DNA of 64,000 bases from Octopus sinensis (Eukaryota). The stretch spans positions 55,800,001 to 55,864,000 of the forward strand of contig NC_043009.1 of the NCBI RefSeq assembly GCF_006345805.1, read 5' to 3'. Position numbers and translations under genes: made by a program. Numbering within the stretch: position 1 is the stretch's first letter; the number at the start of each line of letters is the position of its first letter. The notes below the pieces were generated by a model. It searched no databases. It saw only the letters and a list, made by a program, of their open reading frames with translations, and was not told the origin of the DNA. This document shows positions 1-64,000 of this stretch, one piece after another.

Positions 1-40
1 TTACCTCAATTTTGGTGGTACACCAAAATGGTGAATGTAT
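1..40 (-). CDS. DHDH: DHDH copy A exon 6 (partial)
   Basis: Acceptor ...ttttaacag, then IHSPFWCTTKIEV; homologous to exon 6 of B and C. Confidence 0.85.
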   Translation of the reverse strand, partial: MHSPFWCTTKIEV

Positions 41-3000
41 CTGTTAAAATAGGAACATACAATAAATACATAAAAGTATTTTAGTTTAATTTTCCTGACT
101 ATTTATGTTATAACTGTTGGAGCTGGTAGAATAGATTAATCAATAAATGGCATGTCATAAATTCTAAATTGATTAAGTTTAAATTTCAGATTAAGTAATT
201 ATGAATTTAATTTTCAAATATCTTTATCTTTAAATGAAATGATTACTTACATAAATTTTGCCTTTAGTTCCATAGATATATGCATCAGTTCTTCCATTCA
301 AAGTAGCATCAATGGACAAAGAGGCTCTGGCACCGTCCTTATAAGTCAGAATAATATTGGCAGACTGGTCAACATCTTTTCCAAATGAAACAATATTATT
401 TCTTTTTTTTTTATTTTTCATTATTACACATAAATGCAACCATGACATACAAATCATTACATTCTGGAATTTATAATGAATATTGACATCATTGAGAGCC
501 AGCGGCTGCACCAAGCTCCAATCTGATCTGGCAATGTTTCTACAGCCAGATGCCCTTCCTAATGCCAACCACTCCGAGAGTGTAGTGGGTGCTTTTTACA
601 TGCCACCAGCACAGGAGCCAGTCAGGTAGGCCTGGCATCGATCATGTTCGGATGGTGCTTTTTACGTGGCACCGGCACAGAAGCCAGTCAGGGGGCACTG
701 GCCACAGCTGCGATATTGGTTTTTACCAAAAAAAAAAAATAACAATAATAATAATAATAATAAATAAACCCTCTTTGTGCAGCTGTCTCATGAGGTTTGG
801 TTTATAATTAGTAACAGGTACAGACCTCTTCACTGCAGTATAGGACTTTAAGAGCAAAAGATCATGTGAATTCAGCATTGAAAACTCAACTGGAAAAGAT
901 TCCTTGGACACTAGCTTATATTATCTGTTGATTTTATGAAGATAGCAAATAATAACTTAAAATTCTTTTAATTATATTTATTCACTCAATTATGTGTGTG
1001 AGTTACATAGACATAGATTTATTTTACTAAGCCTCTACCCACACAAAACCATTATCGTAATTGAGTAAGGAGACAGACAAAATTAAAGAGAATAGAACTA
1101 TGTCAGAAACAGTTTCAAAATCCCTAAAATAGGTATACAAGCTATATGAAACCTTCATTAATGAGATACTTACCTGTATCAGCAATTGTTCCAACAGCTG
1201 TAATTGTCTCAGGTTTCTCTCTGAATACGAAGTTTGCAAGCCATATTGTATATACACCAATATCCAATAGAGTACTACCACCTAAGGAAGGCTGAGATAC
1301 AGCATCCTTTGCAAAGATATTAACAAAGAAAGCTACATCTATGTAGCGTATCTTTCCTATGGTTCCAGACTCAATTTCTTGTCGAATGGCTGCATAGGCT
1401 GGGAAGAAGGCGGACCACAAGGCCTGAAAGGAAAAAAAAATTACAAGAAAGATAAAAATAAAAAGACTAAGATTAAGGATGAGAAAATTAAGGCTGAAAA
1501 GAAAGGAATGAAAGTAAATATATAAATAAATGATGGGAAAAATATATGATAAATATAAAAATACATGGAGGATAAAAAAATATTATAAAACTGTTGCTTT
1601 TCTTTATGTTATTCAATATATGATAATATTTTACAATTATCTTCTTCACCTTTATATTTATCAGATCCACTGTATAGCATTTCTTTCAATACACATCAAT
1701 TTTTTTAGATAAATTACCTCATTAAATATATCATTCTACTTCATCTCATGGTACAAAGAATAACATCATTACCACCTTCATTTATTATTTATATCGAATC
1801 CAAATCAGTGTATCACCATTCTACTAAGGCTGAAAACTGATTCCTTATATACATTTTGCTTTCATTTTCATATATTTGTTTCCATTCTGCCTCTTGTGAC
1901 AATCAGTTTTCTACTGCTCTCATTTCTGCACCATTACTTATGAAATATGAAGTATAGCCTTCTAATATTATCATCTCTGTGTAGTTACCTTTCACACAGT
2001 CCAGTCTTCCTCCTCCTCCTCCACATCATCATTTAGCATCTGTCCTCCATGCTGGTATAGCCAGGATGGTTTAACAAGAGCTGGCAACCAGACAACTGCA
2101 CCAAGCTCCACTTTCTATTTTGGCATGGTTTTTATGGCTAGACGCCCTTCCTAGTATCAACCACTTTACAGAGTGGATTCTCGGCAAAAAAATTATATCT
2201 TTAAATTTCTTCTTTGATGAAAAGTTCTATTCCAAACACTAGACTTTATTTCAACATCCAACATGATGGTATACCAATTAGAGAGCCTCTATACAGTAAC
2301 TGGGTTAGCTTGAAATAGGAGCTAAATCACTCCCAATTACATCCTACAATCTGAAAAAATAAAGTGAAGAACAACTTCAGATTAAAATATCAGAAAAAAA
2401 AAAGAGAATGACATCAAATGTAGTTGTAGAAACAACACCTTTGAAAAGTAGAAAAAAATATTAGGTGGAAAGATTTTGGTCATGGACCTGTTATGATGAT
2501 CTAATGAAACATCACCGATGACAGCATACAAACATACACCAATCCAGTATTAAAAGACATACCTCCATGTAAAATAGGTTCTGTGACTTTGCCAGTTGAA
2601 GCATGTCTTCTGTATCCTTTGTGGTAATTGCACAGGTTTTCTCACACAGAACTGGTTTGCCATTGTTAAGCATAAGAATGGAGAGAGGACGATGGTAACT
2701 GTTGACAGTTGAAATGTATACCACATCTGTGGGAAAAATGAAATATAATTACTTGATTTTAGTATTAAAGTAATTCATTTATCTCATTCAACTGTGATTA
2801 GCAGTGATAATCGTTCCATTTCTAGACCGGGTCTAAAAACGAAACACTTACCACTGTTGATGATATGTATATCATTATCATCATCATCATTTATGCCTAT
2901 TACATGAGGCAGGTGAGCTTTGTTGAGACAAGATTTTCTACAGCTGGATGCTCTTCCTGTCACCATTGCTGACCAGTTTTCATGGCCTGCGATGTCTGTT

Positions 3001-63300: not shown

Positions 63301-64000
63301 CTATGGTTCCAGAGTCAATTATTTCTCTTAGAGCTTTATAAGCTGGGAAGAAGTTGGACCACAAAGCCTAAGGAGAAAGCATTTATGTTGAAAAAAAGAA
63401 AGAATGTTTAAAGTGAGGAATAAGAATGAAAGAAAGGAACTTATGTATAAAAAGATACAAGCGAATGTTGAAAGAAATATTATAAAAGACCAGCTTATTT
63501 CTGTTATTTTTCATCATGTTATTCTGTGTTGCGATCTTTAATATTATACCACTACGTTCCTCACCTCTGTTTCTATTAAGTTTTCACAGATAAGGTACAT
63601 TACTAAGCGTATAATTTACAAATAAAGCACATTATGGATCCTCTTTATAAGGGCTGATGTATATTCAATGAACAGCAACGTGCCAAAATGCACAATTTTA
63701 GAGTTAAGAGACATACCTCCATGAAAAATAATTTCTTTGACTTTGCAAGTTCAGTCATTTCTTCTGTCTGCTTCGTATTACAAGCACAGGTTTTCTCACA
63801 TAGAACAGGTTTACCATTGTTCAGTATAAGAATGGAAAGAGGATGATGGAAAATGTTGACCGTTGAAAGGTACACAAGATCTATGAGTAAAACGAAATTA
63901 TATTAGTTTTCTTTGCTATCAAAGTAATGCGTTTGTGTAATTCAAGTGTGTTATATAGAATTAATTGTTTAATATTTACACTTGTCTATCTTGCGTGTGC
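60371..64000. repeat. Segmental duplicate of 18424-29746 with two large deletions
   Basis: 60371-60465 = 18424-18518; 60466-63216 = 21117-23820; 63232-64000 = about 28980-29746. Confidence 0.85.
63217..64000 (-). pseudogene. DHDH: DHDH copy D: duplicate of B truncated in exon 4 (exons 1-2 lie beyond the window)
   Basis: Exon 3 at 63717-63880 is intact. Exon 4 starts at 63367 and is broken at 63217, reading on to a stop at 63161 (…FVSQHFVSQHSSVYRPKSNFTSINGVLC*). Exons 5-7 are absent. Confidence 0.85.

Follow-up and report, generated by a model that had tools for sequence, protein, structure and literature searches.

Why does an octopus chromosome carry a row of genes for one kind of oxidoreductase that are almost identical on the cofactor side and strongly different just ahead of the catalytic motif? 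The question is raised by a stretch of 64,000 nucleotides from Octopus sinensis (GCA_006345805.1, CM016871.1:55,800,001-55,864,000), referred to here as the window, which overlaps the genomic locus of one of the matching octopus DHDH proteins over 15,137 bp at 100% identity. It holds four genes related to trans-1,2-dihydrobenzene-1,2-diol dehydrogenase (DHDH), which belongs to the Gfo/Idh/MocA proteins, all on the minus strand, two of them intact (A and B) and two broken (C and D). Judged by sequence, the window covers part of a tandem DHDH expansion that is specific to octopods. This expansion has proceeded by birth and death of copies, and we consider it likely that the surviving paralogues have been diversifying in the small molecule bound or turned over by way of a loop at the mouth of the active site. 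At least four same-strand DHDH-like copies had been noticed in a preliminary description of the window, in agreement with the four gene models obtained here, and the peptides quoted in it, all on the minus strand, begin at 1336 for A, 29027 for B, and 53910 for C. The copies and their loops are located as follows.

9853 to 1, minus strand: copy A (A-type, canonical DHDH), XP_029643986, 329 aa, with exons 1-5 and 40 nt of exon 6 in the window.
1336 to 1247, minus strand: loop of copy A, codons 150-179, VAFFVNIFAKDAVSQPSLGGSTLLDIGVYT, with the GGxxxDxxxY motif included; the peptide was located on this strand.
34976 to 24228, minus strand: copy B (B-type), complete and with an intact open reading frame (ORF), XP_029643987, 333 aa.
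29027 to 28938, minus strand: loop of copy B, AAFFVSAFSFNFVSQHSLGGGGLLGASVYQ, with Gly at the catalytic Asp position, where all other B/F-type copies have Cys.
57365 to 43349 (to 58213 with a duplicate exon 1), minus strand: copy C (C-type, probable pseudogene copy), complete in extent, from the gene model.
53910 to 53818, minus strand: loop of copy C, ATMFYNLMLSNDAASEAFLDRSALIDIGINL, of 31 codons (one inserted codon); the peptide was located on this strand.
63880 to 63161 within the window, minus strand: copy D (B-type, truncated), XP_036364284, 188 aa; exon 3 at 63880-63717 and exon 4 from 63367 to a deletion junction.

The identity of these genes is indicated by several comparisons. Exon 4 alone as a query returned two short fragments only, and the homologue search was therefore run with an alignment of three window copies, the profile of which matches octopus proteins annotated as DHDH with E-values down to 1e-185. 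The translations of the gene models of A, B, and D are exactly the RefSeq proteins given above. Each copy comprises seven coding exons of 84, 112, 164, 250, 125, and 151 nt followed by a last exon of 104-125 nt, and the splice sites of the models are AG/GT throughout. In Pfam, A and B contain the Rossmann N-terminal domain PF01408 (E 1e-20 to 1e-22) and the C-terminal domain PF22725/PF02894, while D contains PF01408 only. The closest solved structure by sequence is that of monkey DHDH, 2o48 (phmmer with copy A, E=5.5e-71). The same structure takes Foldseek rank 1 for an AlphaFold2 (AF2) model of B (mean predicted local distance difference test, pLDDT, 96.7), with a template modelling (TM) score of 0.93, a root mean square deviation (rmsd) of 1.3 Å, and 36% identity.

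Recounting from the gene models gave the same identities between B and C as those quoted in the preliminary description, namely 33/37 in exon 2, 44/50 in exon 6, and 6 over the 30/31 residues of the loop. There, this contrast was taken as a sign of diversification. Diversification of the loop does hold on wider comparison, but B and C represent two old lineages and C is a probable pseudogene copy, and the contrast alone would fit decay too. The loops of A and B are identical at 17/30 positions, so the very low value of 6/31 is specific to the old, separate C-type lineage. Outside codons 150-179, the ratio of nonsynonymous to synonymous divergence (dN/dS, NG86 method) was 0.22-0.53 in all pairs and 0.40 between the C types of O. 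sinensis and O. bimaculoides. In support of the preliminary description, amino-acid change is indeed concentrated in the exon-4 loop, with the remaining gene under purifying selection. In the young B-type loop, simple counting gave 14 nonsynonymous (N) and 0 synonymous (S) changes. By parsimony on the tree of the B clade, 15-16N:1S fell in the loop as against 29-30N:23S elsewhere (Fisher p=0.003-0.004; density of N changes, p about 1e-6). A similar excess of 10N:1S was found in the loop between the C types of O. sinensis and O. bimaculoides. Copy C and the intact O. sinensis C-type protein differ at 23 positions in all, 10/31 in the loop and 13/306 elsewhere (p=5e-6). Between copy B and its O. 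vulgaris counterpart, the loop carries 3N:0S and the rest of the gene 5N:5S. The amino-acid changes that followed duplication cluster at residues 154-161 and 174-176.

It was considered whether recent gene conversion accounts for the conservation of exons 2 and 6. This candidate was rejected, the dS in these exons being 0.4-0.8, like that of the remaining gene. Since dS is uniform along the gene (0.3-0.8 per exon), the conservation of exons 2 and 6 is attributed to selection rather than to conversion. More broadly, conversion mosaics or mis-assembly of a repetitive region might have produced both the clustered differences and the extra copies. The region is indeed rich in segmental duplicates (90-99% identity) and tandem repeats, and B and D are 99.1% identical over 28979-29746 and only 90% identical in the flank. 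Moreover, the O. sinensis assembly is presumably a long-read assembly of a type prone to homopolymer errors. An artefact of this kind is nevertheless highly improbable in our judgement. Tracts from diverged donors would add synonymous changes, which are not enriched in the B-clade loop (0-1 S), and dS is uniform across exons. In addition, the order C-B-A and the paralogue types recur in O. vulgaris and O. bimaculoides, which were assembled independently.

The catalytic residues display a second kind of change. The consensus set consists of His79, Lys97 of the EKP motif, and Asp176 and Tyr180 of GGxxxDxxxY. Among 80 non-cephalopod DHDH homologues, His79, Lys97, and Tyr180 are present in 80/80 and Asp176 in 73/80. 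His79 and Tyr180 are taken here to be catalytic, in line with statements made at the level of the family (PMC5969746). The set is complete in copy A (His77/Lys95/Asp174/Tyr178, all canonical), lacks Asp in B, and lacks Lys, GG, and Tyr in C, while in D the whole motif is absent. The octopod types can be described in these terms as follows.

A type (three species): all four catalytic residues kept.
B and F types: Cys at the Asp position (Gly in copy B of the window).
G and H types: Glu at the Asp position.
C type (both species): Lys replaced by Gln, and GG by DR or HR.

Exon 2 on the cofactor side (ITAVVSKS...) is nearly identical in all copies. The A type thus retains the full His-Lys-Asp-Tyr catalytic set. 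In the other types, purifying selection has maintained the NADP-binding half and most of the fold, and a catalytic residue is replaced. Across Gfo/Idh/MocA proteins, Lys and Asp are conserved catalytic residues, the third position is His (Tyr in DHDH), and the nicotinamide is held by Glu of the EKP motif (PMC5969746, PMC11612644). At least the C type probably works with altered or lost canonical catalysis.

The position of the loop in the fold was examined in the model of B. A strand at 145-153 is followed by a loop at 154-159, a short helix at 160-163, a further loop at 164-170, and a helix at 171-187 on which the positions of Asp and Tyr lie; the lowest pLDDT falls at 161-170. A flexible loop with a comparable location has been described in scyllo-inositol dehydrogenase from Paracoccus (PDB 5YAB), where A169-G185, ahead of the catalytic Asp191, covers the active site and moves with the substrate (PMC5969746). 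Mutation of this loop alters the substrate kinetics, and Arg178 tunes substrate acceptance (PMC5969746). The non-conserved loop of that enzyme lies 6-22 residues before the Asp, and the octopus hot spot (154-161, with Asp at 174) is equally distant and falls in a loop or short helix in the model. The two are distant relatives (16-17% identity in the Foldseek list), and the equivalence is one of position and not of superposed coordinates. After duplication, amino-acid change has built up almost only at 154-161 and 174-176, that is, between strand 145-153 and the Asp/Tyr helix. With the equivalent loop in the solved relative covering the entrance of the active site and helping to set the substrate range, the surviving paralogues are most likely diversifying in the small molecule that is bound or turned over.

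Known proteins also allow the catalytic changes to be placed in context. Mammalian DHDH (PDB 2o48, 2o4u, 2poq, 3ohs) and the octopus copies have the two-domain Gfo/Idh/MocA fold in common. Copy A keeps the His79, Lys97, Asp176, and Tyr180 of the mammalian enzyme, whereas most octopus paralogues replace Asp176 (by Cys, Gly, or Glu) or Lys97 (by Gln). To our knowledge, mammals have a single DHDH gene, compared with at least 13 loci in O. sinensis. What is known of DHDH comes largely from mammals, and there is still debate over the physiological function of the enzyme (xenobiotic dihydrodiols, D-xylose, 1,5-anhydrofructose). The primate enzyme is an efficient 1,5-anhydro-D-fructose reductase (PMC12441222). 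A precedent for the octopus paralogues is offered by GFOD1, in which the fold and the dimer are kept, the consensus residues are lost (EKP to DRT), and the protein may bind rather than catalyse. GFOD1 and the octopus C type are not closely related. GFOD1 is also without cofactor binding, whereas the C type has an almost unchanged Rossmann half and keeps the Glu of EKP, only Lys being lost. The crystallins of cephalopods are likewise derived from enzymes, the S-crystallins from glutathione S-transferase (GST) and omega-crystallin from aldehyde dehydrogenase (ALDH). Like the octopus DHDH copies, they form a lineage-specific multi-copy family that arose from a detoxification-type enzyme, with catalytic residues lost or reduced in most copies. 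They differ in being lens proteins of very high abundance, whereas octopus DHDH has been reported at the protein level from ink alone. The preliminary description put forward a change of substrate specificity or a shift to non-catalytic roles, with the crystallins as an analogy; these are possible readings.

The report from ink, a single ink-proteome identification, is the only expression evidence for the paralogues that the literature search returned. In the supplement to the O. vulgaris ink proteome, obtained by liquid chromatography-tandem mass spectrometry (LC-MS/MS), A0A6P7T245 (LOC115218668, 337 aa) was identified with 3 unique peptides, 4 peptide-spectrum matches (PSMs), and 9% coverage in 2/3 samples (PMC10142993). 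By sequence this protein is of the C type, with CEQT, its own loop, and the C-terminal ...LGGTESQ extension that is found in C and E, the latter a C-type copy outside the window. The protein database returned no intact C-type protein of O. sinensis or O. vulgaris, and the sequence was taken from the supplement of the ink-proteome paper.

The two broken copies bear on the question of whether simple decay accounts for the whole pattern, the non-A copies being unexpressed or functionless duplicates that drift to pseudogenes, loop divergence included. The exons of copy C (minus strand) and its lesion are as follows.

Exons of copy C: 1, 57365-57282 (duplicate 58213-58130); 2, 56640-56529; 3, 55982-55819; 4, 53996-53745; 5, 51102-50978; 6, 50717-50567; 7, 43473-43349.
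53928 to 53913, minus strand: frameshift in copy C, an A5 run reduced to A4 (53928-53925), with a premature TAG at 53915-53913 five codons on; from DNA alignments with A, B, and the O. bimaculoides C type, which has A5.

Exon 4 of C measures 252 nt instead of 250 through a 3-nt insertion and a 1-nt deletion, and because of this 1-bp loss the C peptide quoted in the preliminary description lies in a frame that is not reached from the upstream exons. Further hidden frameshifts behind the divergence of the C loop were considered and rejected, since after one base is restored the frame matches the C-type proteins of O. bimaculoides and O. sinensis. C has Lys97 replaced by Gln (CEQT), GG by DR, and Tyr180 by Asn; this Tyr is invariant among the non-cephalopod homologues (80/80) and is present in all other octopus copies. 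The assembly annotation calls no protein-coding gene at C. In O. vulgaris, a protein of 337 aa is annotated at the positional orthologue. As the frameshift lies in a homopolymer and this orthologue is 337 aa long, the lesion is either very recent or an assembly error. In copy D, of which exons 1-2 lie past base 64000 and only exon 3 and a truncated exon 4 are within the window, a 5.1-kb deletion cut mid-loop and removed half of exon 4 and exons 5-7, so that the GGxxxDxxxY motif is gone. A 15-bp duplication occupies 63246-63217, and at 63216 the gene runs directly into sequence that B, B4, and B2 carry downstream of the gene (B 23822 is the equivalent position), with read-through up to a stop at about 63163-63161. 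Up to mid-loop, D and B are 97-99% identical. Long (TA)n/(TG)n runs stand beside the equivalents of this junction at about 23830-23880.

The frameshift and Tyr180 replacement in C, the truncation of D, and a nonsense codon in the outside copy B4 (CGA to TGA, R233*, in exon 5, L003 about 9167-9291) all speak for decay, as do the Gly at the Asp/Cys position in the O. sinensis copy B alone and the 7N:0S between B and D. Against it stand the low dN/dS outside the loop in all pairs and between the C-type orthologues. B, B2, B3, F, G, H, and the O. bimaculoides C type have retained their ORFs and every splice site. The positional orthologue of B in O. vulgaris also has an intact ORF, with 8 nonsynonymous and 5 synonymous differences between the two species. 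Each paralogue's loop is nearly identical in O. sinensis and O. vulgaris, with 0-1 of 30 positions different between orthologues, and a C-type protein is reported from ink. Simple decay is consequently judged improbable as an explanation of the family as a whole.

Several points weigh against diversification of the surviving paralogues through the entrance loop. The limits of the loop, 30 codons (150-179) of exon 4, were taken from the comparison in the preliminary description, which included B, and the selection tests were counting methods and not codon models. Two of the four window copies, C and D, are dead, and the frameshift of C, being in a homopolymer, could be an assembly error. That the loop lies over the active site is inferred by position, from secondary structure and a distant relative. 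The assignment of the ink protein to the C type over other paralogues rests on the software's choice of master protein. Lastly, the B-clade loop is marginal against the neutral expectation of omega = 1 (binomial p≈0.055-0.07; p≈0.06 in round terms), and local relaxation for this reason stays the main rival. Here the loop would be a tolerant surface segment that drifts after duplication (omega about 1) over a constrained core, and no new specificity would arise. The loop's first half varies strongly in non-cephalopod DHDHs too, where residues 146-168 belong to the segments of highest variability (80 homologues, entropy 2.5 vs mean 1.77), and loop omega in old paralogue pairs is about 0.7-1.3. 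Other results run counter to relaxation. Among the fast sites are the catalytic Asp position and the two residues next to it, all of them conserved elsewhere (Asp in 73/80), and the excesses of 15-16:1 in the B clade and 10:1 in the C type arose in independent lineages. In the G, H, and Argonauta lineages, the loop is conserved as much as the remaining protein or more, with 5/30 loop sites different between G and Argonauta as against 30% elsewhere. The possibility that the loop is generally unconstrained in octopods was rejected on this conservation and on the stability of the loops between the sister species. We therefore read the pattern of the loop as duplication-linked diversification and give relaxation without adaptation a subordinate, rather low probability.

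The window is embedded in a larger array. At least nine same-strand DHDH loci are found at 55.78-55.96 Mb, in the order B2, C-type, B4, C-type (E), D, C, B, A, G. F and B3 lie in a second cluster at 37.2 Mb, and H and a distant paralogue X are found elsewhere on the chromosome. B-type and C-type genes alternate with spacers that are collinear at 90-99% identity, from which it follows that the array grew by duplication of a two-gene unit. The spacer downstream of D belongs to this pattern.

63218 to 60465, minus strand: spacer downstream of D, with homologous spacers downstream of B (at 21116-23822, 90% identity) and of the outside copies B4 and B2.

This spacer marks the repeated duplication unit of one B-type and one C-type gene. 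Growth took place by segmental duplication of the unequal-crossover type, with a unit of roughly 30-48 kb. Copies were lost through ordinary lesions, namely the homopolymer frameshift in C, the 5.1-kb deletion with its 15-bp junction duplication in D, and the nonsense codon in B4. Copy E has a GC and not a GT donor after exon 6 (L001 2923-3073). The dead copies C, D, and B4 are interspersed with the intact A, B, B2, B3, and G, with orthologues in three Octopus species. The earlier suggestion of lineage-specific birth and death is borne out by this arrangement, and the DHDH genes are, as the sequences indicate, a lineage-specific (octopod) birth-and-death family.

As regards age, O. vulgaris has the order C-B-A, and its region runs collinear with the window at 97-99% identity; in O. 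bimaculoides the order is C-A-G and only B-like fragments are found upstream of C. In a neighbour-joining (NJ) tree, types A, C, F, G, and H each contain O. bimaculoides and O. sinensis with bootstrap 100, and Argonauta falls outside all of them. On this topology, types A, C, F, G, and H are older than the split from O. bimaculoides. The B type is a younger sister of F and was seen in this tree only in O. vulgaris and O. sinensis. The tree and the uniform dS along the gene both indicate that the grouping of the paralogues follows type and not species, with no concerted homogenisation.

The remaining structure of the intact copies is given by their gene models.

Exons of copy A (minus strand): 1, 9853-9770; 2, 3875-3764; 3, 2726-2563; 4, 1423-1174; 5, 375-251; 6, 40-1 (cut by the start of the window).
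Exons of copy B (minus strand): 1, 34976-34893; 2, 30472-30361; 3, 29626-29463; 4, 29114-28865; 5, 27780-27656; 6, 27397-27247; 7, 24343-24228.
34665 to 40718, minus strand: tandem repeat of about 2.07 kb in three units, each with an intact B exon 1 and a GTAAGT donor (self-blastn, 96.9-99.1% between units).

The remainder of exon 6 and exon 7 of A lie past base 1, with exon 7 about 2.4 kb outside the window. At position 204 of the O. sinensis A protein, the codon of which is split over the exon 4/5 junction (1174/375; ...TIADTD|VDQ), Asp stands in place of a Gly with at least 90% conservation across the family, and this Gly is present in the O. vulgaris orthologue. The three copies of B exon 1 begin with ATG at 34976, 37042, and 39108; the first two (1a and 1b) are identical and the third (1c) has Leu10Met. 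Likewise, the two copies of C exon 1 (57365 and 58213) lie within a duplication of about 0.85 kb (56979-58653). Since the duplicate first exons of B and C all keep the ATG and a GTAAGT or GTAAGC donor, they could be alternative first exons or promoters. RefSeq also includes predicted chimeric isoforms that combine B exon 1 with A exons 2-7 and A exon 1 with G exons 2-7 (labels P0128 and P0134). In these models the first exon of one paralogue is joined to the next paralogue downstream, and the reading frame is preserved, as every copy has an exon 1 that ends in phase 0. Intron 6 of B (24489-27099) contains an insertion of about 2.6 kb relative to B4 and B2 outside the window, whose exons 6 and 7 are about 300 bp apart; the insertion holds low-complexity ORFs and a stretch 79% similar to 44436-44955. 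An (AGAT)66 microsatellite is located in B intron 1 at 33792-34055.

Repetitive and exon-like sequences were also encountered between and within the genes. A dispersed repeat family of about 400 bp occurs in both orientations at 83-87% identity (3063-3504, 3992-4404, 7513-7889, and 20706-21013) in the introns of A and in the spacer between B and A, and is probably an element resembling a short interspersed nuclear element (SINE) or a miniature inverted-repeat transposable element (MITE). In the region between B and A, two exon-like matches lie on the minus strand. The one at about 16848-16940 is 74% identical to an unusual N-terminal exon of the O. bimaculoides C-type model and has a counterpart in O. 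vulgaris (L008 32836-32928). The other, at 10039-10101, is 100% identical to the C-terminal tail of a 339-aa B model of O. vulgaris. Both matches suggest read-through or alternative exons in the annotation models. Intron 6 of C (7 kb) houses the remains of a mobile element.

45145 to 49348, plus strand: remnant of a non-LTR (long terminal repeat) retrotransposon, antisense to C (Pfam RVT_1, E=1.5e-32; zf-RVT, 2e-5 and 1.5e-4).
46721 to 48694, plus strand: reverse transcriptase (RT) ORF of this element, 657 aa, from Pfam.
45145 to 45936 and 48755 to 49348, plus strand: flanking zf-RVT ORFs, from Pfam.

Downstream of C exon 7, a 142-aa ORF (41687-42115, minus strand) was suspected to be a retroelement remnant and gave no Pfam match at E<=0.001.

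The preliminary description had proposed an undescribed system. A full-text search found no paper on a cephalopod DHDH expansion, while the genes themselves are already annotated automatically in RefSeq. Tandem birth-and-death families, fast binding loops, and the DHDH enzyme are known already, and what would be new is the combination, in one octopod family, of a more than ten-fold enlargement, catalytic residues that turn over, and a hot spot in the loop. A more far-reaching proposal, which we regard as speculative and unlikely though worth stating, is that the non-A paralogues form a new functional class among Gfo/Idh/MocA proteins. Such proteins would hold NADP(H) without the canonical Lys-Asp-Tyr chemistry (Cys or Glu for Asp, Gln for Lys) and would use a fast-diversifying entrance loop for octopus-specific small molecules, such as catechol or quinone intermediates of ink. 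Their role might then be a secreted or glandular handling of ligands and not housekeeping, with transcripts that share exon 1 as part of the regulation. As for the diversification of the surviving paralogues that we consider likely, a more than ten-fold expansion with one canonical copy, swapped catalytic residues, and a fast entrance loop would represent a natural experiment in the emergence of new specificities or in the origin of pseudoenzymes, and DHDH would add a metabolic family to the gene expansions specific to octopuses.

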